A stretch of 19,659 bases of DNA from Octopus sinensis (taxonomy: Eukaryota), in the NCBI RefSeq assembly GCF_006345805.1, contig NW_021824186.1, positions 1 through 19,659 on the forward strand. The letters run 5' to 3'. The first letter of the stretch is position 1. Every line of letters starts with the position of its first letter. The position numbers and the translations under genes were made by a program. Positions 498 to 19,659 of the stretch are shown here, one piece after another. A model generated the notes under the pieces. That model did not search any database and was not told where the DNA came from. It saw only the letters and a program-made list of their open reading frames with translations.

Positions 498-499
498 GC

Positions 500-530
<31 letters not shown>

Positions 531-551
531 CTATCTATCTATTCATCTCTC

Positions 552-585
<34 letters not shown>

Positions 586-615
586 TGTTTCTATCTATCT
601 ATCTATCCATCTCTC

Positions 616-649
<34 letters not shown>

Positions 650-655
650 TGTATG

Positions 656-718
<63 letters not shown>

Positions 719-830
719 GCATCTATCTATATTTCTGTCTGTCTGTCTGTATATATATGTATGCGTATACACAGAAAACACGCGCGCGCATACACACACA
801 GATGTAAAATATGCACACATATATATATGG

Positions 831-868
<38 letters not shown>

Positions 869-985
869 ATATGATATGAATGTATATCAGAAATTAGAAA
901 TACCATAGACAAAAAGTGACGTTTGTAATGCGTGCCTACGTTTGTATGTGAGTGTGTGTGTGTGTGTGTGTTTGTGCGCGCACGT
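40..985. repeat. Compound microsatellite block: TA/TG, (CT)n, (CTAT)n, (GTAT)n, (GT)n
   Basis: Directly visible, e.g. (CTAT)n ~400-495, alternating (GTAT)n/(CTAT)n 505-690, (GT)n 836-865. It accounts for all ORFs called in this interval. Confidence 0.95.
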
Positions 986-1771
986 ATGTGTGTGTGCGTT
1001 TGTACATGCGTGTGTTCGTATGTCTGTGCACACATGACCTTTTGCATATAATCTCTCCTTAGTCTTTATCCTATCTCCCACGCGTTTTATCTCCACTCAT
1101 CATTGTCAACAAGCTTCTCAGTCGCCAATCTTCTCACTTTCCGACTCTCACTGACTTCTCTCTCTCCCCCCCTCTCCTCTCCTCTCTTCCCTGCCCCCCC
1201 CCCACTTTCCCTTTTCTAATGGCATGTGACGTTATACGATACGCAATCATCTCTGCAATGTAATCACAAACAACGTGAAAATACAATACGTTGAAATTCC
1301 GCGAAAGATAACGCCGTGTTATGTGAGTGACAGTGTGAAATAGCGCACACACCGACACACACATACACAAATATATATATATATATATATACACACACGC
1401 ACATTCAATACCATACACACATTCAATACCATACTTAGCCACCTAGCTGCATATATTTACGCATGGTTCAGTGTGGGTGTTGATATTTGTATAGCAATGA
1501 AATTTTTTTCTTTTATTAAAGAAGATGATAAAAAAATCAGATGAATATATACAAAAGTTATTCCGTAAAAATTCCCGAAAAAGCTGTCCTTAAATTCATA
1601 AATTCACTGTTTAGAATCTAAACTTTTTGGGCCAACGTCCGCCTCATGGCCACATGATACCCTCAGCGCCTCTACCCCTATTTTTATGTATAAATAAATA
1701 TTTTATATTTTACTTATTTATATATACTATGAATTATTTGATATTTAATATATTATTATATAATTTGTACA

Positions 1772-2195
1772 GGCCTAGGAGTGTCTGTGTGGTAAGTAGG
1801 CTTGCTTACGAACCACGTAGTTCCGGGTTCAGTCCCACTGCGTGCTACCTTGGGCAAGTGTCTTCTAATTTAGCCTCGAGCATACCAAAGCCTTGTGAGT
1901 GGATTTGGTAGGCGGAAACTGAAAGAAGCCCGTCGTATATATGTATATGTATATATATATGTATGTGTGTATACGTTTGTGTGTCTGTGTTTGCCCCACC
2001 CCCCAGCATTGCTTGACAATGGGTGCTGGTGTGTTTACGTCCCCGTAACTTAGCGGTTCTGCAAAAGAGACCGATAAAATAAGTACTAGGCTTACAAAGA
2101 ATAAGTCCTGGGGTCGATGTGCTCGACTAAAGGCGGTGCTCCAGCATGCCCTCAGTCAAATGAGTGAAACAAGTAAAAGAGAATAGAAGAGAATA
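1772..2195 (+). mobile_element. Near full-length tRNA-derived SINE (family A in this window)
   Basis: A-box-like tgtgtggtaag (~1787), B-box ggttcagtccc (1826-1836), CORE-like ttgggcaagtgtcttcta, internal TA/TG microsatellite, 3' part ggggtcgatgtgctcgactaaaggcggtgctccagcatg and an A-rich gagaata tail. Homologous copies at 4395-4578 (+), 16983-17150 (-) and 18475-18826 (-). Confidence 0.9.
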
Positions 2196-2574
2196 CAATA
2201 CTATAATACTATAATAAATTCATAGCGTCCCCGAATTCACTGCTTACCTCCCAACGCCTCCTTATTCTCTACCCTACCCACCCCTCGCCCCCTTATGCAC
2301 CACCGCCCAACTGGACTGTCTCAACGCCGACTGGGGGGCGGCAGCGCTCATTTTGAGATTTCTTTTAGATGAATTCTTTTAATTTCATCATATAGATAAA
2401 TTCTTTAATCCTTTTATACTTTGATGCCTTTCAATCCAAAGGCTGTAAACATATTGGGTCTCCACCAGTATTATCTCTTTTACAATGGCCATTCTTATGT
2501 GGTTGACTTTTGGTGAATGAAACAGTTGAATACTGCTGCCCTCTTTTGAGATTCTCGCCATGAACTTCACAGCA

Positions 2575-2905
2575 GAAGGTCAATATGTTTTCTTGAAAAC
2601 ATCTCTCGTTCCATGTAGGTCTCTCAGATTTTTTGACCAGATGTTTAGCTGTGCGCTTTTGAATTCCAAGCTATAGCAGTACCTGGTCCTCTCTTTAGAA
2701 GAAGTGGTGTAGGATATTTGGAACAGGGCAGTGCACGTTGTGACCTGGGATACTTCTCGATACCAGAGTTTGTTACAGACACCTCTAGCATTTTCCGTAT
2801 GTATATCACCGTATATTTCGCCCGTCTTCGCTGCAGGAAGTAGAGCCGTACCTTTTTCAGTCTCTCCTAATAGCTCAGTTGTCCCATTGGTGAATACCTA
2901 CATTG
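2575..2905 (-). mobile_element. Degenerate CR1/L2-like LINE, 3' end of ORF2
   Basis: Hand translation of the minus strand gives MGQLSY*ERLKKVRLYFLQRRRAKYTVIYIRKMLE, then after a frameshift RTRYCYSLEFKSAQLNIWSKNLRDLHG..DVFKK. This matches the LSYxERLxxLxLxSLxRRR...LFNxLPxxLRD...FKxxLD C-terminal pattern of CR1-group ORF2, with stops and frameshifts. Confidence 0.75.
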
Positions 2906-3619
2906 AAATGACTGTATGGTGCAGCCCAAAGACACCTTGATGGTTGTGCCTTCGACCTCTCTTCGGGGCAGATTAGGGCCCTGAGTTGTCTCCCAACTAG
3001 ACTTACGTTCGTGGTTGACTCCCTTAGTTATAACTCCTTCACAGGCACACACAATGGGAATTTACGCTCAAGATCGTCCTTCTTATCTACCTGCTTTCTA
3101 AGGCTGATGAACCAACACTAGTTATGCCACCGGTGTAGTTGTGGTTTCTCTTAGAAACCTGAATTAAGAATAGCTAAAGAGTACCACACAGCTAGTGGTG
3201 TTACCCCACGTTAAACACTAATCTAGAATTTCAAAGTCTCTACTCTTAACTTTGATTATAGATGAACCTGTCTTTGTCCCGTTCGACCTTTTCACATTTT
3301 GACAAGATATTATTTTTGTCTCAACAACGTCTTTCCACTGCCAGGTTTTTGTGGTGGTTGTGATGATCGGCTGGGTTAGGCGTTAATGATACGACTATCA
3401 GACGGCGTGTACGGAGCTACATGAATATATATATATATGTGTGTGTGTGTATGTGTTTGTGCAAGCAAATACTTTGTAATAGAAAGTGTAAACAGAGTCA
3501 GAAAGAAAAAACAATAAAGAGGAAATAAGTGGAAGGTTGCTAGCACCTGCTGAAAATAGCAATAATTCAGATTCTATCGTTTTTAAATAATATAGTTAGT
3601 ACTTGTACAAAAGTATTCC

Positions 3620-3837
3620 GATATATGCAATAAGCGAAAAGATCTTACACATACGAACACACACACAGACACACACACAAACACACACAAACACACACAC
3701 ACACACACAGACTTTACATACCAAACGTTTCTTGGAACTGGCAACAGGATGGGAAAATGTCAGATGTGGATTAACTCAGTTTATAAAAAAAGAAGACTGA
3801 CAGTTACTTCGAAGATTCGACCACGTAGATTTCATGT

Positions 3838-3900
<63 letters not shown>
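3620..3900. repeat. (CA)n-like tract and long (GT)n tract
   Basis: acac repeats ~3655-3710 and (GT)n 3848-3900. Confidence 0.9.
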
Positions 3901-3902
<2 letters not shown>

Positions 3903-4184
3903 GTGAGTGCAAAGTCCTCGTTGAATGCATGTGAAATATGGGGGCGAGGTCAGTTGGAAAAATAATGTTTGTCATCGCCACCAATACAGGAAATAAGTAA
4001 AAGAAGTGGGTATTTTAGGAAAATATACTCACTATTGATGCTCGGAAAGGGACCCCCCCACCACCAGAGTAGCGAATTGTGGAGGTGGTGGTGGTGGTGA
4101 AGGTGGGGATATTGGTTTGCAATGTTTGCGGTTGTGGGCGGTTATCAAAAGCTACGTTCATTAGTCACCAGCAGAGTTACAGTA

Positions 4185-4192
4185 GCCATCAC

Positions 4193-4225
<33 letters not shown>

Positions 4226-4335
4226 ATTTCTTACACACACATTCGCGTACGCACACAAACATACGTGCACATACACACACACACATACACATATGTATAT
4301 ATAAATACACACGTGTGTGCGTGTGTATGTGCCTA

Positions 4336-4372
<37 letters not shown>
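4185..4372. repeat. (CAT)n, (CA)n and (GT)n microsatellites
   Basis: Directly visible; source of the poly-His/Met/Asp ORFs. Confidence 0.9.
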
Positions 4373-4374
<2 letters not shown>

Positions 4375-4394
4375 TTCTTAATCTCCACTCTACC

Positions 4395-4578
4395 GCGCTT
4401 GACAATTGGTGTTAGTAGCTGTCTCTGTGACAAAAGAAATCGGCAAAAGAAATCGATTGAATGAGTACCAGATTTATTTTTTAAAAGAATGAAAGAAGCA
4501 TAAGTAATGGAGTCGATTTGGTCGACTAAATCCATTTAAGTCGGTGCTCCAGTATGGCTGCAGCCAAATCACGAAAAC
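4395..4578 (+). mobile_element. Degenerate 3' half of a family A SINE
   Basis: gcttgacaattggtgttag...gagtacca...ggagtcgatttggtcgactaaa...ggtgctccagtatggctgcag aligns with 2010-2160. Confidence 0.75.
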
Positions 4579-5104
4579 CAATATGAGATGTGGATATAAA
4601 TGTGAATACGATGATGAACTGACACGTTTTCACATTTGATCAGCTGCTGTATGCAGATTGGTGTTTACTCACAACAAAATACACATACACATATATAAAA
4701 ATTCTACGATTATAAACATAATTGTAATTAGGGTTCAGCAACATTGCTTAACCACATACCGAAATTTAGAAATAGCAGTTAAATACTATCCCACTACCAT
4801 AAGATATCTCCCAGATAGCAATACTCTCAACTCACGCAGGCAAAGAGAAAAAATAACGAATTCAATCGACTTTGATTAACTATATACGCGTTTCTGGGTA
4901 AAAGAGATCTAAAATCAAACTTTTACTCACTTATTCCTGTCGTCAGTATAGTATTTCAATTTTAAATTTGAGAATACTGATAATTACATATGTATTCGAC
5001 CAAAGCGCCATCGAACAACTTATATCGAAAGACCAGTACTTCTGAATTCAAACAGACGAATGAAACCTCGCATTCTCCCCCAATCACCCACATATGTATA
5101 TTAT

Positions 5105-5171
5105 GCATCTATTCTCGTTTATCACTGAAGGCTGGTCCGACAAAACATCACAGTGATAAATGAATCAATGC
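5105..5171 (+). ncRNA. Pre-miRNA-like stem-loop (candidate)
   Basis: tttatcactg (5118-5127) pairs perfectly with cagtgataaa (5151-5160), with outer pairs attc/gaat and gcat/atgc. The 3' arm begins catcacag at 5146. Confidence 0.25.
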
Positions 5172-5627
5172 TAAATGAATGATCAGGTATTTTGTAAATG
5201 GAGCGAATCGTAGGTAGATTCATGGACACCAAACGCGCAGCCCTACATCTGCGAAGCCTCCACCTTTTACATATTTTCTTGGCCATCTCTGCCTTTTCCC
5301 GTTGTCAGTATACATGTCTCGCGTTGTTTGTTAGACTCAGGCGCCTTCACATATTGATGGGTACGAGTCCGTAAACCCGTACAAAAAAAATTAACGCAAA
5401 CAATAACCAGTATAATCTGGGTGACCAGGCATTGTGAAAGGTCACTGATGTACATTTTTCGGGCTCATTCAGAAACTTTGGCCAAACGCTGACCTGTGTT
5501 TATCAAAAAAATCCGCGATAAGCGCAATATGGTTCACAATTGAACGTTCCTTATTATACAGTGCAGTGTTGAATAAATTACTAATAAATGAGCCCCATGT
5601 AAACTATTTATGGATGTATGCTGTTAA

Positions 5628-6321
5628 TCAGTTTTATTTCAAAATTTCTTGCCAATAGGGAAAGAGCCGGTTTCTAACCTGTATGTGTGTATATATGTAT
5701 GTGTGTATATATATATGTATGTGTGTATGTATGTATGTATATATGTATGTGTGTATGTATATATGTATGTATGTATGTACGTACGTACGCACGTATGTAT
5801 GTATGTCATTTCCGAGTTTTATTTTTAAGATTTCTTTCCAATAGAGAAAGAATCGGTTTATAACCTAGATCCGAAGCTTTCATTTGAATTTCAACATCAA
5901 CAACAGGGTATTTTTGTATGTATGTATGTATGTATGTATGTATGTATGTATGTATGTATGTATGTATGTATGTATACGTGCAGATTTGAGTTTTGTTTTA
6001 TGTATATCTTCTCATGCGTGTATTTATTTGCATGTCTAGACATTCTCATATATACTTAAATGATAAACTTGTAAGTTTTACAGATGTTTAGTTTTAGTGA
6101 TAGATTGCATCTGTAGTCTTCGAATCAGCTTTCTTCTTTCTGGTTCTGAGAAGCCTAATTTCTCAAGATTGTTATTTAGGCAGTGTATTACATTATTCAG
6201 TTTTATTTCAAGACTTTTTGCCAATAGAGAAAGAAGCGGTTTCTAACCTAGATCCAAGACCCTTTCATTAGGATTTCAACATCAACCACAGGATATTTTT
6301 GTATGTATGTATGTATGTATG

Positions 6322-6350
<29 letters not shown>
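5628..6350 (-). mobile_element. Head-to-tail cluster of 5'-truncated RLE-type (R4/NeSL-like) LINE 3' ends separated by (CATA)n
   Basis: Minus 6197-6056 translates as IHCLNNNLEKLGFSEPERRKLIRRLQMQSIT/(frameshift)ICKTYKFII*, resembling the C-terminus after an RLE domain. UTR and (CATA)n follow. A terminal module occurs three times (6191-6300, 5806-5916, partial 5628-5680). Confidence 0.7.
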
Positions 6351-6352
<2 letters not shown>

Positions 6353-6425
6353 GGATGTATGGATGGATGGATGGATGGATGGATGGATGGATGGGTGGAT
6401 GGATAGATGGATGTACGTATGTATG
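6300..6425. repeat. (GTAT)n followed by (GGAT)n
   Basis: Directly visible. Confidence 0.95.
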
Positions 6426-6734
6426 TAATAATGAATGGATGGTTGTTTGTACGTATGTACGGTCTCTCTATTTTCGGTCATGTGAAGACATCCTGCATGG
6501 ATGGAGGTCGTACCTGACAAAATGAATCACTGGAATGTTGGTAACTTGAGAAAAGTCTTGAATATTTTTACTCTTCCTCTTACTGTTAGTATTTGTAATG
6601 TGCGTTTGCCGATTGAGGCGAAAATCTCAGGGTTCCTTATTACCTAAGATTTTTCGTGCTAGATCCTACTGTCTACTTCTTCTGCAATGGATGAGGGGGG
6701 CGAATCGTAATTTGGTCCTGTCTAGTCTTTATCT

Positions 6735-7615
6735 CTCTCTCTCTCTCTGTCACACATTCACACACACATACTCACTCATACACATGCACACAGAACAAAG
6801 ATACACATACACACCTGTACACACACACACACACACACTATTTCTTACTATCTCTCCCTCTTTTTCTCTCTTTCCCCCTCTCTCTCTACATATACACACA
6901 ACATATGCACACATATAAATACATACGCACATACACACACATACATATGTACACATTGACATTGCATATATACATAAATTCACGCATATACAAAGATGTG
7001 TGAGTGTGTGTGTATGTGTTAGTACATTCACTCATTCAGAAGAATGGGACTAATGGTATGTGAGATATAAATCACTGTGTAAGTGCACGCACACACACAT
7101 ACACATACACATACACATAGACACATATACACAGATATGCATACACACACATACACACAAACATACACATACAGCTATACATAGATAGGTACACACACTC
7201 ACACGCTGACACACACAGACAAATATACACAGATATGCATAGATAGGTACACACACACAATCACACACTTGCACACACATAGACACATACACACAGATAT
7301 GCATACACACACATACAAGTATGTATAGACAGGTACACACACTCACGCTGACACACACATAAACACATATATACAGAAATGCATAGATAGGTACACACAC
7401 ACAATCACACACTTACACACACACAGATATGCACACACACACACATATATACACACATACAGACACACACATACAAGTATACACATAGACACACATATAT
7501 ACAGATACACACACACACACACACAGATATGCAGACACACACATATACACACATACAGACACACTCATACAAGTATACACATAGACACATATATACAGAT
7601 ATACACACACACATT
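6735..7615. repeat. CA-rich microsatellite-derived minisatellite with higher-order units
   Basis: aggtacacacactcac at ~7188 and ~7331 (~143 bp period); cagatatgca...catacaagtatacacatagacac at ~7424 and ~7524 (~100 bp period). Confidence 0.85.
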
Positions 7616-7863
7616 TTGTATGCATTGCATGGTTGTACCAGAATACGAAACAACGTATGTAACGCAAACGTTATCTCTGCTTTGTGTGTAAATGTCACAA
7701 GCAATTAACACTCTACACAGTTCTAAATATGCGTGTGTGTATTTCAACGTTTCTTATCACTACTTAAACTGACATAATCTACATTCGAACCCCTCTCGCT
7801 CCCACCCACTCTTTTTTTTTTGTGCATTTCTTAAACACTCCTATTATCTTCTTGATTTTCTTT

Positions 7864-7864
<1 letters not shown>

Positions 7865-7919
<55 letters not shown>

Positions 7920-8600
7920 TTTCCAGTCTTTGTCGGTTTCATCGTCTTCTCTTCTATTTTGATTTTTCCATTTAACATCTTTATCTACTTATAGTAAAAT
8001 ATTTCATCATTCTCTTTCCATCCATTTCCTCCTCCTTCTCCTCCTCTTCTTCCTCCTCCTCCTTCCCTGTGTCTCTGTCTGCGTGTGAGCCCGTGCGTGT
8101 ATACTCGTACCTAAATAGGCACAGAGCTACGTATATATACGTAAAAAGTATACATGCGCCTATTACACACAAACACACACAAACACACACAAACAACACA
8201 CAAACACGCACATATATATGTATATGTGAATGTATATCTATAAGTATATGTAGATATATACACATATGTGTGTGTGTACATTTACAGATGTACTTATATA
8301 TTTACAATTATTCATATGCAAATACATTTATGCATACACACACATATACATGTGCGTATATATATATTATATATATATATATTATATATATATATATGTG
8401 TGTATATATATATATGTTTATATCTATATATGTATATATATTATGTTATATATATATGCATCTATATATATATATGATATATATATGTATATGTATTATA
8501 TTATATATATATATATAATCTATATCATATATAATATATATATGTATATGTATATGTATGTATATATATATTATATATATTATATATATATATATTAATT
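7865..8600. repeat. (GT)n, CT/CCT-rich tract and long imperfect TA-rich tract
   Basis: Directly visible. Confidence 0.9.
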
Positions 8601-8691
8601 TCAACAATTGAGGCAAAATTAATTAATATTATTAATTTCACCTAGTTGTTCAGTATGCAAGGGACCATCAGGCGAATTCAAATTATTACAT

Positions 8692-8778
8692 TATATAAAG
8701 GGCTTAGTAAAATAAATTACTTGCCGCATACTGATTCAGTATGCGGCAAAGTAATTTATTTTATAAGCCCTTTATATA
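8692..8778. repeat. Near-perfect palindrome, 43-bp arms with a 1-nt loop
   Basis: tatataaagggcttagtaaaataaattacttgccgcatactga-t-tcagtatgcggcaaagtaatttattttataagccctttatata; only two 1-nt indels between the arms. Confidence 0.9.
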
Positions 8779-9151
8779 TGTATATATATATATATATAAT
8801 ACATAAGCGCACACAAATGCATACAGATACGTTCGTTTTTGTGTGTGCATAAGTATTCATATTTATCTACGTTCACGCACCCTTTTTTAAAATAAAATTG
8901 TTTATATTTATTGCTCATTCATTTAACTTTCATTTCTATGTTATTTGTATTTTCGTCTGCCAGCAAAAAAAAAATAATAATAATTCGGAGACGTTCCACA
9001 ATATTTGAAGGCACCTAAGCATAATTACACATGCGCTCATACTTACAAATTTAACCTCCATATATATCTACAGATATTTTCACTGTTTTCTGTATTGTTT
9101 CATAGATAAACGACTGACAAAGGAAGTTGATTTTAACCCTAGGCGTCAAAT

Positions 9152-9205
9152 GCCGCTGATGAGAATTAAGGTGGTCTACACCAAAATTCGAAATCGCAAT
9201 ACGGC
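9152..9205 (+). ncRNA. Type I hammerhead ribozyme motif, family 1
   Basis: Stem I gccg/cggc; CUGAUGA 9156-9162; stem II gaatt/aattc plus ggtg/cacc; GAAA 9190-9193; stem III A-U, U-A with loop cgca; cleavage triplet AUA (cut after 9201). Enclosed by ccctag/ctaggg and a 12-bp gactgacaaagg/cctttgtcagtc stem. Confidence 0.75.
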
Positions 9206-9589
9206 TATATGCGCTAGGGACCTACCTCCCTTTGTCAGTCATTATGTATAATGCTTTAATGGCTTTGTAGTTAATTTAACTCTTATTTTAGCATAAGCAG
9301 TGCAAGTTAGAAAACTCAATAATTTTCGAGACCTCAATTAATTTTACGTTAAGATTCTAATTGCTAATAAGCAACCCTTTTAATTTGTATGTTCATACAT
9401 AGATATGTGTGTTTGCGCGCGTCTGGTATTCACGTTGTGCCCTTGTTTGTATAGGTGTATGTGTGTATGTGTGATCGTGCGCATACACACACACATACAC
9501 ATAAACACGCACACACATAAATATATACATAAATATATTTGTTGATGGAAGCTACATTTATGTTGAGTTAGTCATTGCTGCTTTTCTCA

Positions 9590-9719
9590 TTTGTATAATT
9601 TTCTTTTTATGCATCTGAAGATTGCTCTACTTTTTAAATTGATGTAATGTTTGCATTGTTCAATTAAATGGAGTCGCATGAAACGATCGTACTGCATTAC
9701 CTCTGGATATTCTTGTTGC

Positions 9720-9727
<8 letters not shown>
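9590..9727 (+). mobile_element. Short repeat abutting (TA)n and carrying a hammerhead (family 2, copy 1); Penelope pLTR-like or retrozyme-like
   Basis: About 90% identical by eye to 16506-16645 on the minus strand; both copies end directly in a long (TA)n. Confidence 0.7.
9609..9697 (+). ncRNA. Type I hammerhead ribozyme motif with long stem II, family 2
   Basis: atgca/tgcat stem I (one mismatch next to the core), CUGAAGA 9615-9621, ~58-nt stem II hairpin (tgc/gca, aattga/tcaatt, taatg/cattg), GAAA 9680-9683, palindromic stem III acgatcgt, triplet GUA. Confidence 0.7.
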
Positions 9728-9769
<42 letters not shown>

Positions 9770-9806
9770 TATATATAGATATATATATATATATATATAT
9801 ATATAC
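9722..9806. repeat. (TA)n
   Basis: Directly visible. Confidence 0.95.
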
Positions 9807-10054
9807 ATTGGAAACAGATATACACTTAGGTATAATTAATGTGTCGCTTACATGAATGTTAGTTCACCTAAGCGCGATATTTATTTACCGATAGTACGCA
9901 AAGGTACATCAACATGTTTCTACTTTGAAGTAGTGAAATAAATCACTTGAAAAATCTTCCTGCAAGAAAATATGAAGCATTCACCACTCGTTACTTCATA
10001 GGGTTCCTACACCTTTCGGTGATTATTCTCGTTGACAACCGCTCATTTAGTCCT

Positions 10055-10145
10055 TCACCAACACCAACACCAGTGCCACCACCACCACCACCACCACCAT
10101 CACCACCACCATCACCATCTCCATCCTCCTCCTCCTCCTTATCAC

Positions 10146-10181
<36 letters not shown>

Positions 10182-10232
10182 TGTTGTCGTCGTCGTCGTC
10201 CCCTCCTCCTCCTCCTCCGCCTCATCGTCATC
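10055..10232. repeat. Compound trinucleotide tract (CAC/CAT/CCT/GTC)
   Basis: Directly visible; source of the poly-Pro/Ser and poly-His ORFs. Confidence 0.9.
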
Positions 10233-10544
10233 CTCAAAATCAAATTAACCCGATTTCCGTGGCTTATGACTAACGAGGATCACGAGGCCACGCCAACGAA
10301 CACGATGCTACCCGTCGCAGGATTACCCATATACAGGTGAGTGCGCTGGAACAATGTGCAACGAAGGGATTTGTTCCGAAGCACAACATACTGCAACCAT
10401 GAATATAATACCCTAAACACTGGGCGTCGCGCATTCACTTCATTATCCGCTGTTGATCTCATGATTGGTTGGTACTGGAGAATCGATTACTGACGGGAAT
10501 GACAATGAAGCAGCTATGTTATGTATCCCGGTGAGAAAAATTAC

Positions 10545-10645
10545 AAGGCGGGCGAAGTGGCCGAATCGCTGGCGTTTTGGGTTAAATGCTTAGTGGTATT
10601 TCTTCCAAATATTTACGTTCAGAGTTCAATTACCGAAGTCAGCCA
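10545..10645 (+). mobile_element. Old degenerate SINE head (family B)
   Basis: aaggcgggcgaagtggccgaatcg...aaatgcttagtggtattt...tacgttcagagttcaatt aligns with the head of the SINE at 11234. Confidence 0.65.
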
Positions 10646-10686
10646 TACTTCGAAAGTACAAGTATCAATTGTAGATTTCTTTGATG

Positions 10687-10905
10687 TACGAGAGATTGCT
10701 GAAAAGTTTCTGGTTTTATGGTTATCGCGAAAGACCTGGTTGGAGGCCCAGCCTTCCGAGTTCTTTACAGGGCTTAGAAAAACTGCAAGGCCGCTGCAAT
10801 AAGTGTGTGAATCTGAGAGGGGAATATATTGAATGAAATCATAATTTACTGATCCTCCAATATTTTCTTTTACTCAAAGCCAGGAACTCTTCTGCACCCC
10901 TCATA
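10687..10905 (+). mobile_element. Non-autonomous Tc1/mariner-derived MITE
   Basis: TA at both ends; imperfect TIRs tacgagagattgctgaaaagtttctggtttt / aaagccaggaactcttctgcacccctcata; internal remnant ...CNKCVNLRGEYIE*, typical of a mariner transposase C-terminus. Confidence 0.85.
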
Positions 10906-10935
10906 ACCGTCTTCTAGCCTTATTAAAAATTTCAG

Positions 10936-11061
10936 GCCTTGCGCCAGTTGTAGAAAGAATTATAGAACAATACACGGAAAAAAAGTTGATAGAAATGAAT
11001 ATTATTTGTCCTCATTGCAATTTTTGGGAGAAATCATAAAAAAATCGGAAGAAAAAATATG
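10936..11061 (+). CDS. Candidate 126-nt coding exon with weak resemblance to the TMEM63/OSCA cytosolic region
   Basis: tttcag| acceptor, ATATG|gtaatt donor, 126 nt, open frame (R)PCASCRKNYRTIHGKKVDRNEYYLSSLQFLGEIIKKSEEKI. It is frame-compatible with the strong donor ACAG|gtgagt at 10336. The similarity was judged from memory only. Confidence 0.3.
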
Positions 11062-11233
11062 GTAATTTACTGATAGTGAATTCCAAATTGAAATCTAATA
11101 TAGATATCGTCCCAGGAATACGAGCTATGATCTTAAATGTAATTTGATTTGTGGAAACGCGCGTAGCGATGCATTAAATGTTTACAAATTCCATCCTCGG
11201 AATTATTGTTACTATTATTATATACTTACGCGA

Positions 11234-11466
11234 AAGGCAGCGAGCTGGCAGAAACGTTAGCACGCCGGGCGAAATGCGTAGCCGTATTTCGTCTGCCGCT
11301 ACGTTCTGAGTTCAAATTCCGCCGAGGTCGACTTTGCCTTTCATCCTTTCGGGATCGATTAAATAAGTACCCGTTACGCACTGGGGTCGATGTAATCGAC
11401 TTAACCCCTTTATCTGTCCTTCTTTGTCCTCTCTGTGTTTAGTCCATTGTGGGTAGAAAAGAAATA
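11234..11466 (+). mobile_element. Full-length tRNA-derived SINE (family B)
   Basis: Head aaggcagcgagctggcagaaacgttagcacgccggg, B-box gagttcaaattcc, central gaggtcgactttgcctttcatcctttcggg, 3' ggggtcgatgtaatcgact and an A-rich tail. Confidence 0.9.
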
Positions 11467-11630
11467 GGTATTTTGTCTGGTGCTACGTTCTGAGTTCAAA
11501 TTCCGCCTAGGTCGACTTTGCCTTTCATCCTTTCGGGGTTGAGAAAATAATTACCAGTTGAACACTAGGGTCGATGTAATCGACTCATATCCACCTCCCC
11601 TTAGCTGCCCCTGTAGCAAAAATTTGAAAT
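11467..11630 (+). mobile_element. 5'-truncated family B SINE with a different 3' end, directly abutting the previous copy
   Basis: gctacgttctgagttcaaattccgcc..ggtcgactttgcctttcatcctttcgggg repeated from ~11297-11352; tail diverges after gtaatcgact. Confidence 0.85.
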
Positions 11631-11670
11631 ACTTATTCTATAGATACACATATACCATATATCACATAGA

Positions 11671-11712
<42 letters not shown>

Positions 11713-11714
<2 letters not shown>

Positions 11715-12441
11715 AACTAGTTTAATTTAAACATCTTGGTATCCTGAGTTTCCAGTGTGTCGCTAACCTTCGGCCGTTGAGCTTAAATGAAAGTTTGATT
11801 GAAGAGTCAATGTTTTTCTACTAGATATTAGCCTGCGACTGGTCGAGAAAGGCCACGTTGTGTTGCAATTTGATGTTGGAATTTCAGCGACAGCAAATAC
11901 CGCATGGTGAACAAGAAATTGACCGCGTGATGGAGAGGTAGTCGGTCACGTGGTTGGGGGAATTATGACGGGGGCGGGCGATGCAAGATTATATATGCAT
12001 ATATATGTTCATGTGTATACCCATTTATCTGCGTGTATGCGCCCATACGCGTCCAAGTTTATAATTGTGCGTAGATGCACATTCACACACCTGCACGCGC
12101 GAAGAAAAGCACACACGAACAGTCACAAACACACGAACGCAGGAACTCACAGGCACGAACACACACTCACACACACGCAGAAACTCACAGACACACACAC
12201 ACTCACTCACACGATCGATTTCCTGTCCACCACGCGGTCAGTTTCCTGTTCACCATGTGGTATTTTCCCAGTAATTTTTGTTACCCTAAATACCACTATC
12301 AAACTGCGACACCACGTGACCTTTTTCAACCAATCGCGGTCCAGTAGTAAATATTGACTCTCTTTAATAAAACTCAATGAACGAAGACTAGAGAAACGCT
12401 TGAAACTCGGAGTACCAAGGTGTTTGGATAAAACTGATTTG
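11713..12441. repeat. Diverged inverted repeat pair (11713-11938 + and 12222-12441 -) around a CA-rich spacer
   Basis: Colinear alignment by eye, e.g. aaacatcttggtatcctgagtttcc vs aaacaccttggtactccgagtttca, and aataccgcatggtgaacaagaaattgaccgcgtgatggagagg vs aataccacatggtgaacaggaaactgaccgcgtggtggacagg. Confidence 0.85.
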
Positions 12442-12502
12442 ATCCACACATCTAACACCCGATAAATGTGTTGAGTCCTCTTCTTTCGTTTGTCTACTCA
12501 CT

Positions 12503-12503
12503 C

Positions 12504-12581
<78 letters not shown>

Positions 12582-12620
12582 CTGTGTGCGTGTGTGTGTG
12601 TGTATATATATATATACATA
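12503..12620. repeat. (TA)n(TG)n compound microsatellite
   Basis: Directly visible. Confidence 0.95.
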
Positions 12621-13331
12621 TTTATTATATTGTTATTATATGACCGAACGCACGCGTTGTTTTCTCTTCTCCAAGTAAGTTTTTAGTTGAATAATTATGA
12701 CGCGCACTCTTACTCTTTACTTGACCTTTCCTAACAGCCTGTCTGTCTTCCTCTCTGACCGTTGACCGGAGTGCTACTAAACTTTCTTTCTGCCCGTGCT
12801 TTCAACAAGCCAACATCGACTTCTCTGTCTTCCGCAAGCCGATTTTTCCCATGCGTTCTAATGAATTTTTCCACCGTCTATAGGCTTAAAAAAAGCCCTT
12901 ACTGTTGGTTTCCTTGTCCTGTTATTCTTTATTTGTAATGTTTTTATCTACTGTTTTTTCTTCATTTGTATTGCTTTTACGTCCTGTTCTTGTCACTTGT
13001 TTTACCCCTCTGCAAAAGAATTTTATTAAATTCCTTTTGCAGGAAGGATTGCTTCGGCCGGGTCGTGTTCTGCCCTTACCTTCGAAACACGTATTGAGTC
13101 AAACTAGGGGCAGCTGATGAAGGGGAATTTTCCTTGTATTGCTTGTCCTGTATTCTGTTTTTTCGTTGTTTAAAAAGTCCGTTTCCTTGTTTGATTTTAT
13201 GTTTTCGTTTCTCGTTGTGTTCTACGTTTATTTGTGGTGTCCTGTACTCATATATGCATGTATATATACATATAGATGTGAGTATGTACATATATGTATG
13301 TATATATGCATATGTTTTATTTATTATATTG

Positions 13332-13366
<35 letters not shown>

Positions 13367-13544
13367 TAAATTCTCAGTATAAAATAATGTACATCGAAAC
13401 ACAAGAGAAAACTACCTTTAATAGGTAATTTTTACACGCTGGAAGAAGCAGTCAAAACGACCAAAACAATTTCGAAGGGAATGAAAAATAAAAACTTCTA
13501 TCTTGTTATTTTTTATTTTTATTTATAAAAAAATTTTTTTTTAC

Positions 13545-13686
13545 CTTAGATAGATAGATAGATAGATAGATAGATACATACATACATACATATATGCATA
13601 TGTGTAGAAAGAGAAAGAGGCAGGGAGAGAGAAAGGGAGGGAGAGGTAGAGGGAAGGAAAGAGAGAGAGGGAGGGAGAGAGAGATA
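13545..13686. repeat. (TAGA)n, (TACA)n and GA-rich tract
   Basis: Directly visible. Confidence 0.9.
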
Positions 13687-13939
13687 ATCCTATCTGATCA
13701 AATGATAACAAGGAAGTTGTCTATACTTTACAGATTTTATTTTGATAGCTAGATAGATCAATATTAACTACAGCCGTCACTTGCGAGTGAATACGTCGTG
13801 ACAGCAAGTACGATGTTTTAGCCGATTGTTTCGGGTGATTATATATTAACCATCAATTAAAGATAACGACTTCATCCTCTCTAAATTATCCAATGAAAAG
13901 AGACATTGAAAAGAGAGACCTGCAGCGACGTTTGTTTCT

Positions 13940-14068
13940 GTCTCATTTCTAACTAGAGTGGAGCAACGTAAAATGGAGTATGACCCTCAGGAGCAAATGG
14001 TGCCGCAATAACCCAGAAACGAACCCGCGAACTTATGATCAATGGCACAATGCTCAATCCATTAAGCG
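13940..14068 (-). mobile_element. Old degenerate tRNA-SINE head and CORE-like region
   Basis: gagtggagcaacgtaaaatg...cagaaacgaacccgcgaacttatgatc...caatccattaagc parallels the SINE at 15690-15870 and contains a reverse B-box remnant. Confidence 0.55.
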
Positions 14069-14149
14069 TGGCTACGGTAATTCACAGAAACGTATACATA
14101 CTTTATGTAAAAACATACACATAAATGTGGTTATCTATGCATCTATCTC

Positions 14150-14580
14150 AGACACACACTCTCTCTCTCTTTCACATACACACATACATTCTCTCTTTCT
14201 CCTCCTCTCTCTGTGTTTCTTTCTCTCTCTCTGTTTTTTTCTCTCTCTGTCTCTTTCTCTCTCTCTGTCTTTTTCTCTCTCTTACTCACTCCACAGGTCT
14301 TTTAAATATCCAGACATTTTCTCGAACCTCACATACGCACGCATCCGTGCACTACACACCATATACACACGTAGATACGTAAACACATAAACGGGCGTGT
14401 AAGATAACAAACGCAACAACAACAGCAACAACAACAGCAACAACAACAACAACAAACCAAAACTACAACAACAACATCCATACCAACCATATTTCAACGT
14501 ACAAGAAGAATAAAATCGCCATCACCACCACCACCACCAACACCAACACCAACACCAACAACAACAACAAAATCAACAAG
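14150..14580. repeat. CT-rich tract followed by (CAA/CAG/CAC)n
   Basis: Directly visible. Confidence 0.9.
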
Positions 14581-14923
14581 AATGCCTGTAAATCTTTTAC
14601 TTCTAATGGTTTTATGACTCTGCAACTGTCTATTTTAGTAAAGAGCCTCATAAAATAATAATATGCTACCCATATTCAACCCTCATCTCTGTCTCTCACT
14701 CTCTCTCACGTATTCTCTCTCTCTCTCAGGTCCTCTCTAATTCTCTCTGTGTCACTCACATTCCATTATCTCTCTCCTTCCTCTCTTCTTCCCACTTTTG
14801 CTATCACCCATTGTATATACTATTTCATAGTTATCTACCCATTATATATTTTGCCTTATTTATTATAATAGTTGTTGCTTTTACCGTTCTTTTATTATTA
14901 TAATTTATTATATTTTGCTGCCG

Positions 14924-14924
<1 letters not shown>

Positions 14925-14977
<53 letters not shown>

Positions 14978-15035
14978 GTTATTATTATTATCGTTTTATT
15001 TTTGTTGCTGTTGTTGTTGCTGTTGTTGTTGCTAT
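14925..15035. repeat. (TTA)n followed by (GTT/GCT)n
   Basis: Directly visible. Confidence 0.95.
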
Positions 15036-15554
15036 TTACTTAGGCTGAACGATAGCGAAATACAGTGGAGGGTTTTATGATTATCGCGGAAGGCATCAGT
15101 CCAAGCCATTTATCAGATCAAGAGATATTATCCAAAAGATATTCCGTTATTGCCTGAGAAGTTGTCAGCATGTCTGGCAGTATGGATGCGCTCAAAAAAA
15201 CATAATGGCCGGGCAATTAGGAAAGAACTTCAAGATACTGCGGTATGGGAGCGGAGAAAGAGAGAGAGAGGAGGAGAGAAAGGGGGAGAGAGAGATGGGA
15301 AGGGCGTGGTGCGAGACGAACGCGTACTTATATCATTTTGTGGTTAAAAATGTCGAATGGGAGAGGAGCTATGCCTATGGCTTGCTTGGTAGATTGTTAG
15401 AGGTGTGGTGGTTTCATGGTTTAATACCGAGGTGGATCGTGTTACTGTTACTTAAAAGCTTCTTCGCTGCACTTTGAAACGGCGTTTCAGAATACCCTAC
15501 ATTTAAAAGAACCAAGTGCCTAGACTATAATAACAACAATAATAATAATTATTA

Positions 15555-15630
15555 TTTCTTCTAGAGGCACAAGGCCTGAACTTCGGCGGTAGGGGACTAG
15601 TCGCTCAAATCGACCCCAGTGTTTCACAGG
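15555..15630 (-). mobile_element. 3' fragment of a family B-like SINE
   Basis: Minus strand reads ctggggtcgatttgagcgactagtcccctaccgccgaagttcaggccttgtgcctctagaag, then a TAA/TTA tail; ggggtcgat is shared with 11382 and 11567. Confidence 0.6.
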
Positions 15631-15689
15631 TCAAATTGAATGTCTGATTACTTTTGGCTGTTTTGGCATATTATTTACATAAAAAAATA

Positions 15690-15870
15690 AATGCACCCTT
15701 TTAAAGACTACTCAGGCTCATGGGCCCGGTTTCCCGATTTCTATGGCGTATGTATTCCCCAGTTAGACAGGACGCCAGTCCATCGCAGCGTTACTCATTT
15801 TTGCCAACTGAGTGAACTGGAGCAACGTGAAATGAAGTGTTTTGCTCAAGAACACAGCGCGTCGCCCGTA
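15690..15870 (-). mobile_element. 5'-truncated CORE-like SINE (family C)
   Basis: Minus strand reads gtgttcttgagcaaaacacttcatttcacgttgctccagttcactcagttggcaaaaatgagtaacgctgcgatggactggcgtcctgtc...gggcccatgagcctgag...aaaagggtgcat, with a ttta-type tail. Confidence 0.75.
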
Positions 15871-16447
15871 GTTTTTATATTTTTATGTTTCAGTTTTTGA
15901 TTCATTGCTTATATGAGAAAAATTCAACATTATAATTCTGTTCCATACTACAACTACCGAAATAAATTCTAATAAAAATAAGCGAACTGGAGATTAAAGA
16001 GCGAAGTACCTTTTGACAAGTCACCTGAGGAAACACATCAGCACATTCGATGCATTAGAACTGTTTGTATTGCATCTCATCTGCGAGACACCGATGTACG
16101 ATGGGTCGAGACGATCGTAGTGAATCATAAGGAATCTCGTGAATTACATATTCTTTCTCTTATATTTTATAGACACTATGGACACGAAGGAATTGCTAGA
16201 GTCAATACAACGGCAAATGCCTTCATACTGTTGATGACATCAAGTAGCCGAATACTGTGACGGGGCTTTAAACTACATATTACAGGGTATATATATTTAG
16301 AGTCAGATCATGGCTGCTATTTTCAGCATGGTGGTATCTCGTAGATACCCTAATTTATAATCTTAATTATTGCATTTGAAGGTTACTTTTTCCATACTGA
16401 CCACTTGATGAAATCGTTATTTTATTTTTCAATTAACGAGCATGTCC

Positions 16448-16491
<44 letters not shown>

Positions 16492-16505
16492 ATATATATA
16501 TATAT

Positions 16506-16645
16506 AATCAAAATAGGCAACAAGGATATCCAGAGGTAATGCAGTACGATCGTTTCATGCGACTCCATATAATTAAACAATGCATGTATTACATCAGTTT
16601 TAAAATGTAGAGCAATCTTCAGCTGCATATAAATATAGAATTTAG
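16506..16645 (-). mobile_element. Short repeat abutting (TA)n and carrying a hammerhead (family 2, copy 2)
   Basis: Reverse-complement homologue of 9590-9727, adjacent to (TA)n 16452-16505. Confidence 0.7.
16539..16628 (-). ncRNA. Type I hammerhead ribozyme motif with intact core, family 2
   Basis: Minus strand: perfect 6-bp stem I atgcag/ctgcat, CUGAAGA, long stem II ending ggagtcgcat, GAAA, palindromic stem III acgatcgt, triplet GUA. Confidence 0.8.
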
Positions 16646-16861
16646 TTAAATTTAAAAGATACATTTTTATAGTTATTCCATTTACCAACATCACAAAGAG
16701 GGTAATTAGGTAGACAGAAAAACAAGTTTCATCATCATACATATATCATCATACATATTCAAAAACTAAAAAATGCGACAAGAACGTAACACATGCGGAT
16801 AGACGCTGGAAAGAAAACAAGGGCGGATCATCCAGAGCTTTCTTTCCTCAGTCGAGTTTCA

Positions 16862-16974
<113 letters not shown>

Positions 16975-16982
16975 GAACAAAC

Positions 16983-17150
16983 GTATACGACAGGCTTCTT
17001 TCAGTTTCTGCCTGCCAAATTCAGTAAAAATGCTCTGATTGGCCCAGGGCTACAATAGAAGACACTATCCGAGAATTGCCTCGCAGCGAGACCGAACCCA
17101 AGAATATGTAGCTGGGAAGCAAACGTCTTACCAGAGACCCACTCTGGCGC
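16983..17150 (-). mobile_element. 5' half of a family A SINE
   Basis: Minus strand gcgccagagtgggtctctggtaag...gggttcggtctcgctgcg...gatagtgtcttctattgtagccc is homologous to 1772-1935. Confidence 0.8.
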
Positions 17151-17418
17151 TTATATGTTTGTGTATCTCTGCAAACCACATACGATAATTCCAAAAAGCA
17201 TACATTTCATCTCGTTTTAAATGTAATGTGTGATAACTTGGTTATATCCAAACAACGCTGGCTTGATGCATTCTTTCATAAATTCTCGGGCATCAACCTT
17301 GTATCATTTAAACAGGTAAAGAAATAAGCAATATAAGCTTGTTTATGACTTACATAAAGAGAATAGTCATTTTAGTTGAGGTAAGTGTAATGCGGTGTAT
17401 GCAATACTAATGAATATA

Positions 17419-17584
17419 CATTATTTACATTATTTACATTTGACGGATATTTGTCCTCATCTTGTTTGTTGTTAACACAAAGTTTCAGCTCATATACCCT
17501 CCAGCCTACATCAGGTGTCTTGAGTAAATTTCGAACCTGGGTTCTCATTCCTAAGGTATTTTTCGATGTTATTATTATTATTAC

Positions 17585-17653
<69 letters not shown>

Positions 17654-17999
17654 TAGTTTTATTTTTATTTTTATAGCGTGCTTTCACTTCACTACCGAGC
17701 GCAGCTCTGTGTGCCTTGGGTATGTGCTGTGATTTGTTGTGATGCTCTGATCGTTATTGTATGGAAAGTGTTCTGCGTAGGGTGTGTGCAGTGCCTAGTA
17801 GTGCAATTTTCTGTATGTTATATGTGTTTGTAAGTCCTGGTGTTTTTGTTATGTATTTGTCTGAATATTTTTTTATCATACCTAATGCACCTACTATGAT
17901 AGGAATTGTTTCTGTTTTCAGATTCCACATTCTGGTTACCTCTATTTCCAGGTCTTTGTATTTTGAGAGTTTCTCCATTTCTTTTAGAGACACGTTGTC

Positions 18000-18003
<4 letters not shown>
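17419..18003 (-). mobile_element. 5'-truncated R4/Dong-type RLE LINE 3' end with internal (TAA)n and a terminal module
   Basis: 17754-18003 encodes NVSLKEMEKLSKYKDLEIEVTRMWNLKTETIPIIVGALGMIKK...IQKIALLGTAHTLRRTLSIQ*, with the KxxKYxxL...W...PxxVGAxG pattern of RLE domains. Then UTR to 17651, (TAA)n, a 150-bp module and an (AATGTAAAT)2 tail. Confidence 0.85.
17474..17519 (-). ncRNA. Degenerate minimal type I hammerhead, family 3, copy A
   Basis: gacac CUGAUGU A ggct..agct GAAA cu UU gtgtt; stems I and II intact, A9 mutated, stem III palindrome damaged. Confidence 0.5.
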
Positions 18004-18071
<68 letters not shown>

Positions 18072-18217
18072 TATTATAATTATTATTATTAGTAGGTAGA
18101 CAGAAAAACAAGTTTCATCAAAAAATTTAAAAATACGACAATAACGTAAAACATGCAGATAGACGATGGAAAGAAAACAAGGAAGGGTCATCATCGAGTT
18201 CCATATATATATATATA

Positions 18218-18422
18218 TCAGGACGCCATGATAGATCGTTAGCTCCTACACGCATTTTTTTCTCTCCTTGTTTCTTTTCTCTGTATCTTTCTGTCGAAGA
18301 GCGTAGGCTCGAAACGTAAAAGACTTTTTCTATTTCTATTCCTGCGCGTCATACTAATACATTTGTTTGTTTGTACTCCACCTGCCTTCGTCTTCTGTTT
18401 ATTTTCGTAAACCTTCCCGTTA
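18218..18422 (+). mobile_element. ~200-bp insertion in (TA)n carrying a minimal hammerhead variant (Penelope pLTR-like, family 4)
   Basis: Flanked by (TA)n on both sides and absent from the matching position of duplication copy A. Confidence 0.7.
18286..18323 (+). ncRNA. Minimal type I hammerhead variant with core CUGUCGA, family 4
   Basis: tcttt CUGUCGA A gagc-gtag-gctc GAAA cg UA aaaga: 5-bp stem I, 4-bp stem II, palindromic ACGU stem III, triplet GUA; A6 replaced by U. Confidence 0.55.
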
Positions 18423-18474
18423 TATATATATATATATAAGCATACCTGTATACATGGATGTTGCTTTTATCATG

Positions 18475-18826
18475 CTTCACTCATTGGACTGCGACCATGC
18501 TGGGGCACCACCTTGAAGAATTTCAGTCAAAAGAATAGACTCCGGTACTTGTGCCGAACTCCCAAGTTACGGGCACGTAAACACACCAACACCGGTTTCC
18601 AAGCGGTGGTGGAATTCAGACATAGCGAGAAACGCGCACACGCACGCACGCACGCACATAAGTATACGACAGCCTTCTTTCAGTTTCTGCCTGCCAAATT
18701 CAAAAATGCTCTGGTCGGCCCAGGGCTACAATAGAAGACACTATCCCAGAATTGTCACGCAGCGAGATTGAACCCAAGAATATATAGCTGGGAAGCAAAT
18801 GTCTTACCAGAGACCCACTCTAGCGC
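18475..18826 (-). mobile_element. Family A SINE, near full length with an internal deletion
   Basis: Head ends at 18826; 3' end cattggactgcgaccatgctggggcaccaccttgaag is the reverse complement of the family A tail. Confidence 0.85.
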
Positions 18827-19094
18827 TTATATGTCTGTGTGTCTCTGCAAACCATATACGATAATGCGAAAAAGCATACATTTCATCTCGTTTTAATTGT
18901 AACGTGTGATAACTTGGTTATAACCAAACAACGCTGGCTTGATGCATTCTTTCATAAATTCTCGGGCATCAACCTTGTATCATTTAAACAGTTAAAAAAA
19001 ACCCCAATATCAGCTTGTTTATGACTTACGTAAAGAGAATAGTCATTTTAGGTGAGGTAAGTGTAATGTGGTGTATGCAATACTAATGAATATA

Positions 19095-19498
19095 CATTAT
19101 TTACATTTGACGGATATTTGTCCTCATCTTGTTTGTTGTTAACACAACGTTTAGGCAAATATACCCTCTAGCCTTCATCAGGTGTCTTAGGGGAAATTTC
19201 GAACCTGGGTTCTCATTCCTAAGGTATTTTTCGATGTTGATAATATTATTATTATTATCATTATTATTATTATTATTATTATTATTCAGTAGTTTTATTT
19301 TTTATAGCGTGCCTTCACTTCACTACCGAGCGCAGCTCTGTGTGCCTTGGGTATGTGCTGTGATTTGTTGTGATGCTCTGATGGTTATTGCATGGAAAGT
19401 GTTCTGCGTAGGATGTTTGCAGTGCCTAGTAGTGCAATTTCTTTGTATGTTATATGTGTTTGTAAGTCCTGGTGTTTTTGTTATGTATTTGTCTGAAT
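19095..19498 (-). mobile_element. Second, shorter copy of the R4/Dong-type LINE 3' end with terminal module
   Basis: Colinear with 17419-17865, truncated at gtctgaata where it runs into (TAA)n. Confidence 0.85.
19141..19186 (-). ncRNA. Degenerate minimal type I hammerhead, family 3, copy B
   Basis: gacac CUGAUGA A ggc..gcc UAAA cg UU gtgtt; CUGAUGA and the AACGUU palindrome are intact, G12 is mutated to U. Confidence 0.55.
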
Positions 19499-19529
19499 AA
19501 TAATGATAATAATAATAATACTAATAATA

Positions 19530-19606
<77 letters not shown>

Positions 19607-19659
19607 TTCTCTTCTTATCATTATTATCATTATAAATATATATACACACTCATATATAA

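Follow-up and report, generated by a model that had tools for sequence, protein, structure and literature searches.

A hammerhead-like module beside a Dong/R4-like LINE end in Octopus sinensis is probably a separate, decayed retroelement fragment

Can the 3' end of a non-LTR retrotransposon be set by a hammerhead ribozyme? This question is raised by a locus in Octopus sinensis, where the end of an RLE-type LINE is followed, twice on the same strand, by a TAA array and a short module with a hammerhead-like motif. The original prediction for this locus took the two copies as replicates of one arrangement. It proposed a LINE that defines its 3' end by dimeric self-cleavage, with a LINE/PLE chimera or stable co-targeting of TAA repeats as alternatives. 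We analysed the whole 19,659-nt stretch of contig NW_021824186.1 (positions 1 to 19,659; "the window") and asked whether the module belongs to the LINE. Positions of all features are given in Table 1.

Table 1. Features of the duplicated locus and related elements in the window
Feature	Position	Strand	Basis and remarks
Upstream (TAA)n array, copy A	18002..18091	-	TRF: period 3, 30 copies, 95% matches
5'-truncated C-terminal ORF fragment, Dong/R4-like RLE LINE, copy A	17754..18003	-	Stop codon 17754-17756
LINE 3'UTR, copy A, 79 nt	17675..17753	-	Between stop codon and (TAA)n; 97.5% identity to copy B
Downstream (TAA)n array, copy A	17569..17674	-	TRF: period 3, 35 copies
Module, copy A	17441..17568	-	Putative 5'-truncated PLE-type or retrozyme-type fragment; 3' limit tentative (only two duplicated copies)
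Hammerhead-like motif, copy A, minimal type I	17474..17519	-	Descriptor scan
AATGTAAAT-type 9-mer repeat 3' of module	17414..17440	-	A/B alignment; 3 units in A, 2 in B
tRNA-derived SINE downstream of module, copy A	16973..17150	-	92% identity between A and B
LINE ORF end and 3'UTR, copy B	19288..19499	-	Stop codon 19385-19387; BLAST and alignment
Module, copy B (duplicate of copy A)	19108..19238	-	~89-91% identity to copy A by BLAST
Hammerhead-like motif, copy B, minimal type I	19141..19186	-	Descriptor scans
tRNA-derived SINE, copy B counterpart	~18652-18826	-	Alignment to copy A
tRNA-derived SINE, further partial inverted copy	1857-1973	+	Within-window comparison
Second motif resembling a minimal hammerhead	18286..18323	+	Descriptor scans
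Complete type I hammerhead	9139..9224	+	Zero core mismatches versus 0.003 expected per shuffled window

Layout of the locus and its duplication

Read directly, the minus strand runs from the end of the RLE-LINE ORF through a UTR of ~80 nt and (TAA)n into a module of ~130 nt and a 9-mer repeat, confirming the predicted layout. The LINE fragment of copy A keeps its last ~82 codons (...KEMEKLSKYKDLEIEV...LSIQ*; the ORF end also reads ...NDNVSLKEMEKLSKYKDLEIEVTRMWNLK...LRRTLSIQ*) and is flanked upstream and downstream by (TAA)n arrays of one orientation. The upstream array is the 5' side of the LINE's target microsatellite and is oriented as the downstream array is. The downstream array, which stands between LINE and module, is the LINE tail together with the 3' side of the same microsatellite. 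In the alignment of A and B, the (TAA)n between UTR and module measures 106 bp in copy A versus ~50 bp in copy B. The module itself is non-repetitive and carries the hammerhead-like motif ~35 nt upstream of the 9-mer repeat, which may be the tail of an element or a decayed TAA-type microsatellite.

Copy B repeats this layout only from inside the ORF (19499) downwards. At that position, within the ORF, the homology between A and B stops against an (ATT)n tract. On the minus strand at this upstream edge of copy B (19495-19640), (AAT)n turns into (ATT)n exactly where the homology to A ends, suggesting a duplication breakpoint or a small inversion inside the microsatellite.

To what extent can the two copies be counted as two observations? 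In a BLAST search of 16900-18110 against the window, 16973-17867 (copy A) matched 18652-19499 (copy B) at 90-94% identity. The duplicated block is ~0.9 kb long, lies at an offset of 1,668 bp and takes in not only the LINE end, TAA array and module but also 260 bp of flanking sequence and a tRNA-derived SINE. Since the SINE and the unrelated flank were duplicated along with the module, A and B are the products of a local segmental duplication and not of two insertions. As a single event, they do not count as replicates in favour of a LINE-module link, and the independent replication on which the original prediction drew is lost. The SINE consists of a head (GCGCCAGAGTGGGTCTCTGGTAAGAC...GGGTTCGGTCTC) and a body (...GGCAGGCAGAAACTGAAAGAAGCC.GTCGTATA) followed by a microsatellite, and is typical of an abundant octopus repeat.

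Comparison of the two copies segment by segment gave identities of 95.9% for the 5' part of the module, 84.8% for the 46-nt hammerhead-like motif and 100% for the 3' part of the module. The motif is therefore the least conserved segment between A and B (84.8% versus 92-100% in its neighbours), with no sign of constraint. Between 17474-17519 and 19141-19186 there are 7 differences, 5 of them clustered within 11 nt; this clustering could reflect chance, a multi-nucleotide mutation or a short conversion tract.

The hammerhead-like motif and other hammerheads in the window

The motif reads GACAC CUGAUGU A GGC..GCU GAAA CU U U GUGUU in copy A (17519-17474, minus strand) and GACAC CUGAUGA A GGC..GCC UAAA CG U U GUGUU in copy B (19186-19141, minus strand). 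The lesions are those originally described. Copy A has CUGAUGU (A9>U) and ACUU, a broken ACGU palindrome, with GAAA..UU intact, and copy B has UAAA (G12>U), with CUGAUGA and the palindromic ACGU intact; U17 comes next in both copies. Neither present-day copy has a complete core, and each carries an inactivating core change. It had also been proposed that the consensus of A and B is a complete minimal type I hammerhead. The minimal type I architecture holds up; the two-copy consensus does not amount to a family consensus, and at each of the three core sites that differ between A and B either base could be ancestral.

The topology is type I, with a helix I of 5 bp (GACAC/GUGUU) and a helix II of 3-4 bp (GGCU/AGCU in copy A) that carries a 12-14-nt loop. 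Helices I and II are both recovered in the MFE fold of copy A, at a stability no better than that of shuffled sequences (z +0.5). Several hallmarks of minimal hammerheads can be followed in the two copies. The unpaired nucleotide between A9 and 10.1 is present, as A, in both; the closing pair G10.1-C11.1 is G-C in copy B and G-U in copy A; and the palindromic 15.1-16.1 segment is ACGU in copy B and the broken ACUU in copy A. Where published PLE minimal hammerheads have a long helix II of 6-8 bp, the module has 3-4 contiguous pairs. No Rfam hammerhead model (Hammerhead_1, _3, _II, HH9, HH10) matched either copy, by gathering score or, in 200-nt searches of each copy, at E<=10. An Rfam scan of the whole window by E-value returned only microsatellite-driven miRNA noise.

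We used two descriptors to compare the window with dinucleotide-shuffled versions of itself. The type I descriptor (helix I of at least 4 bp, CUGANGA, 0-1 extra nt, helix II of at least 3 bp, GAAA, 0-6 nt, U, H) tolerates at most one core mismatch. It gave four matches at three independent loci, versus 0.13 expected per shuffled window (probability of at least three, 0.003). The hallmark descriptor adds one nucleotide between A9 and 10.1, G10.1-C11.1 and a palindromic A-NN'-U (PMC4209133). It was fixed only after the motif had been seen, and found two independent loci (copy B and 18286-18323) versus 0.0007 expected per shuffled window. In architecture, the motif corresponds to a PLE minimal type I hammerhead (PMC4209133), in agreement with the original prediction, and is best read as a genuine but decayed minimal hammerhead of known kind, beyond what chance would produce.

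The second locus found by the hallmark descriptor, 18286-18323 on the plus strand, lies between copies A and B, ~800 bp from the module and on the opposite strand to it, with no LINE adjoining. It reads UCUUU CUGUCGA A GAGC-GUAG-GCUC GAAA CG U A AAAGA and has one core lesion (A6>U). Its architecture is that of the module (an extra A after A9, G10.1-C11.1 and a palindromic ACGU), and its helix II consists of 4 bp closed by a GUAG tetraloop. We considered this motif and the module as an inverted PLE pair and rejected the idea, as the two show no similarity outside the core.

A complete hammerhead is found ~8 kb from the module, again with no LINE adjoining. Its core (9152-9205, plus strand) reads GCCG CUGAUGA GAAUU..GGUG-GUCUA-CACC..AAUUC GAAA UCGCAA U A CGGC, and it gave a weak match to Rfam Hammerhead_HH9 (15 bits, E 0.29 in a 161-nt search). 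The hammerhead sits inside a long hairpin (9112-9240; MFE -49.4 kcal/mol, z -5.7) with additional stems, one of them a perfect 12-bp outer stem (GACUGACAAAGG / CCUUUGUCAGUC). Judged by its sequence and predicted fold, 9112-9240 looks like a solo, highly self-paired retrozyme-type unit, whose hammerhead may still be cleavage-competent as a dimer. With this perfect hammerhead and the second minimal motif near the module, the window is enriched in hammerhead-bearing repeats. Elsewhere in the window, 9631-9725 and 16511-16605 form a 95-nt inverted repeat pair with 91% complementarity, 6.8 kb apart, and are probably two opposite-orientation copies of another dispersed repeat.

Identity of the LINE and the 3' ends of its relatives

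The LINE peptide is 86-90% identical to the Octopus-type matches P0001-P0003, which include O. bimaculoides A0A0L8I0U5, and 56-67% identical to hundreds of short C-terminal ORFs in other animals. Longer relatives add an upstream RPDI(I/V)IKD...(I/L)ID(M/I)S(I/V)P pattern. RVT_1 is present in a full relative (L002), and the best PDB matches of its RT are R2 proteins (E 6e-23). The C-terminus of the LINE aligns collinearly but weakly (E 0.2) to the R2 RLE region (residues 1046-1117), with a PD..D..K-type pattern. Together with the (TAA)n flanks on both sides, these matches uphold the predicted assignment to RLE-type LINEs of the R2/R4 kind, and by sequence the window LINE would fit a Dong/R4-type element. 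Dong sits in (TAA)n and carries an HDV-like ribozyme at its 5' end (PMC3774820), and a full-length Dong consensus has been reported in the O. bimaculoides repeat library (PMC9115989). When a 5'-truncated Dong-type element inserts into a TAA microsatellite, it leaves just this pattern of (TAA)n at either end.

In four other lineages, the LINE has relatives whose 3' ends are AATAAT, (TAA)n or (TAC)n(TAA)n, without a hammerhead. L002 and L003, which come from different samples, are alike through ...aagaacaa(g)aataat and unrelated beyond. The 3' end of L004 is (TAA)5 and that of L018 is AATAATAATAA, i.e. aataataataa. In several of the Tara contigs (L008-L014), the UTR is followed by (TAC)n(TAA)n, where the contigs end. 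The UTR is ~90-110 nt long in L002, L003, L004 and L018 and ~290 nt long in L008-L014, and A/T-rich trinucleotide runs come after it. With the same descriptor, no hammerhead-like motif was found in 38 kb of LINE-relative loci, a comparison with other animals at 56-67% protein identity, such that the end of the octopus family itself may differ. The Octopus-type match P0001 lies on a 743-bp contig and ends without downstream sequence.

Two further observations were made on these relatives. After position 1884 in L008-L014, the ~290-nt 3'UTR leads into (TAC)n grading into (TAA)n, the point at which most of the contigs break; members of this LINE group would thus seem to differ in their specificity for tail and target repeats. 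L002 (3470-3560) and L018 (1950-2050), from different samples, share similar downstream sequence (...acaatgatacacctc...aggcagtgta.aattggcttgtctg) followed by an antisense zf-RVT ORF. It seems that the LINE is nested at the same place in another retroelement, or that these are paralogous loci.

Origin of the module

To determine what the module is, we searched for further copies and for relatives. Within the window, a third copy was detected neither by sensitive BLAST nor by nhmmer. Six-frame translations of both copies, joined as one query, gave no protein match among 2,704 candidates, and the supplements of the octopus LINE paper did not contain the module sequence. Scans with module 21-/22-mers returned zero matches in genome contigs and viral contigs. 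In metagenomes they returned two matches, both due to chance, in unrelated sequence sharing only the 21-mer. Head-to-tail arrays of 170-400-nt units, each with a hammerhead, are expected of retrozymes, and TRF found none. A B-box-like GGTTCGAAA lies ~25 nt upstream of the hammerhead-like motif; since ARAGORN detected no tRNA-like structure in the module, this box is unsupported by a tRNA fold. Furthermore, no PLE ORF (RT or GIY-YIG) was found with the module and no second family member was found, so that an assignment to PLEs rests on motif architecture and the literature.

We conclude that the module is probably a dead solo fragment of a hammerhead-bearing retroelement at (TAA)n, most likely a 5'-truncated PLE or a PLE-derived non-autonomous element. 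Single, dispersed motifs make up the majority of PLE minimal hammerheads; they probably derive from truncated PLEs, and dimers formed through the palindromic helix III have been proposed as their active form (PMC4209133). In the elements themselves, the hammerhead is found close to the 3' end, and microsatellites are a favoured target of several PLE clades (PMC8557442, PMC11167929). In Anolis Poseidon, the hammerhead cuts 26 nt into the ORF and reverse transcription starts ~110-120 nt into it, from which it follows that truncated copies end within ~100 nt downstream of the hammerhead (PMC11167929). The giant squid genome is reported to contain Penelope elements as well as 235 Hammerhead_1 loci (PMC6962438). 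By analogy, a 130-nt fragment with its motif 35-65 nt from its end, beside a microsatellite, would fit the picture of a truncated PLE. Points against a PLE origin are the helix II of 3-4 bp with its 12-14-nt loop and the failure of the Rfam hammerhead models to score either copy. It should also be noted that the TAATGTAAA repeats after the module are TAA-like, which makes a layout of target, LINE, (TAA)n, module and target possible and counts against our preferred explanation.

If the module is such a fragment, the active element would have carried a minimal type I hammerhead with almost no helix III of its own, only A15.1-U16.1 and the palindromic ACGU. Judging from the family, a helix III this reduced would permit cleavage only when two copies pair through the palindrome on a multimeric transcript, and cutting after U17 would then yield unit-length RNA. 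The 5'-truncated Dong/R4-type RLE LINE copy would have entered the same (TAA)n array separately, through target-primed reverse transcription, and insertion into the array would account for the (TAA)n on both of its sides. Later, a block of at least 0.9 kb (the 3' part of the LINE, TAA array, module, 260 bp flank and SINE) was duplicated ~1.67 kb away, and each module copy has since gained different inactivating core mutations.

The original prediction had favoured a different relationship, in which the module is the true 3' terminal domain of the octopus Dong/R4-like LINE, with (TAA)n internal to the element, or, as a variant, one part of a stable LINE/PLE chimera. The hammerhead would then cleave read-through transcripts as a dimer and in this way set the LINE 3' end. 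The order of ORF end, UTR, (TAA)n, module and repeat is real, as such a domain requires, and the TAA-like sequence after the module could be the far side of the target. However, the two copies are a single duplicated event, the module lies outside the (TAA)n-bracketed LINE, the relatives in four lineages end at a trinucleotide run with independent flanks and no hammerhead, and minimal hammerhead motifs occur in the window without a LINE. Target-primed reverse transcription in R2-superfamily elements begins at the RNA 3' end, and a ribozyme cut 35-65 nt upstream of the tail would remove sequence needed for priming. We therefore find the hammerhead unsupported as a 3'-terminal system of the LINE, and consider a terminal domain or chimera very unlikely. 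Of the alternatives offered with it, the data favour an independent element beside a TAA repeat, or co-targeting. That a hammerhead module is systematically coupled to Dong-like LINE 3' ends in octopus, either as a terminal domain or as a non-autonomous TAA-primed partner, is likewise highly improbable. If true, this would be the first RLE LINE lineage to propagate or exploit a hammerhead and a new use of a ribozyme by non-LTR retrotransposons, and it would be relevant to the question of which autonomous elements mobilise animal hammerhead repeats.

A partnership of another kind is conceivable, with the module as a hammerhead-bearing non-autonomous element (SINE-like as Sm-alpha, or a solo non-LTR retrozyme monomer) that has a TAA-like 3' tail, (TAATGTAAA)n, and is mobilised in trans by a Dong-like or other LINE, the neighbourhood of the two reflecting shared target specificity. 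In favour of such an element are the (TAA)n 5' of the module, the TAA-like 9-mer 3' of it, whose unit number differs between A and B, and the B-box-like GGTTCGAAA upstream of the motif; in 2020, the mobilisation of metazoan retrozymes could not yet be assigned to LINEs or to PLEs (PMC7229834). Against it, the tail is not clean (TAA)n, there is no tandem arrangement, no A box and nothing tRNA-like according to ARAGORN, a 2026 preprint links animal retrozymes to PLE pLTRs (doi 10.64898/2026.07.22.740005), and this locus offers a single event only. We regard a solo retrozyme-like or SINE-like element using a LINE as rather unlikely, and as a weaker alternative than a truncated PLE. It is also possible that the module was never a ribozyme, and that its likeness to a hammerhead is a coincidence in an ordinary repeat or in unique DNA. 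Both copies carry one or more lethal core changes, no Rfam model matches and the folds are no more stable than shuffles. Scaled up from 0.13 expected per 19.7 kb, the loose descriptor would find thousands of one-mismatch matches in a genome of a few Gb, and the consensus first put forward takes the favourable base at all three differing sites. Coincidence is nonetheless quite unlikely, given the non-core hallmarks (a nucleotide bulged after A9, G10.1-C11.1 and palindromic ACGU) and given that, with 0.0007 matches expected per window, a locus of the same architecture occurs 800 bp away and a perfect hammerhead 8 kb away.

The analysis thus points to two decayed retroelement fragments that merely happen to lie side by side at a microsatellite and were copied once by local duplication, with a truncated PLE or PLE derivative as the probable source of the module. 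This octopus genome contains minimal hammerheads of the Penelope type, together with at least one type I hammerhead that is intact. Locally duplicated copies should not be counted as independent support, and the practical value of the locus is modest.

Among known systems, the LINE shares with RLE LINEs of the Dong/R4 clade (Xiong & Eickbush 1993; Eickbush et al. 2013, PMC3774820) a C-terminal RLE, insertion into (TAA)n and a TAA-repeat 3' end. The ribozyme of Dong is HDV-like and lies at the 5' end, which the 5'-truncated window copy lacks. To our knowledge, no 3' ribozyme has been described for LINEs of this clade. As far as it is portrayed within PMC4209133, Schistosoma Sm-alpha (Ferbeyre et al. 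1998) resembles the module in being a short non-autonomous hammerhead repeat with pol III box-like sequence upstream. The Sm-alpha hammerhead is canonical in that account, whereas that of the module is minimal and accompanied only by the B-box-like GGTTCGAAA, lacking both an A box and a tRNA-like fold.

Metazoan non-LTR retrozymes (Cervera & De la Pena 2020, PMC7229834; doi 10.64898/2026.07.22.740005) are, like the module, short, non-coding and AT-rich, and by analogy the two would also share a type I hammerhead that needs dimerisation. Retrozymes form tandem 170-400-nt units with strongly self-paired RNA, whereas the module is solo and not notably structured; the 9112-9240 element matches their description better than the module does. 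Compared with PLE minimal hammerheads (Cervera & De la Pena 2014, PMC4209133), the module differs in helix II, which is typically 6-8 bp long in PLEs versus 3-4 bp with a large loop here, and in having core lesions in both copies and being known here without a PLE ORF or pLTR context. It shares with them (PMC4209133) the occurrence as dispersed single motifs, a 5-bp helix I, CUGANGA (intact in copy B), G10.1-C11.1, GAAA (intact in copy A), the unpaired nucleotide between A9 and 10.1, and a helix III cut to A15.1-U16.1 around the palindromic ACGU.
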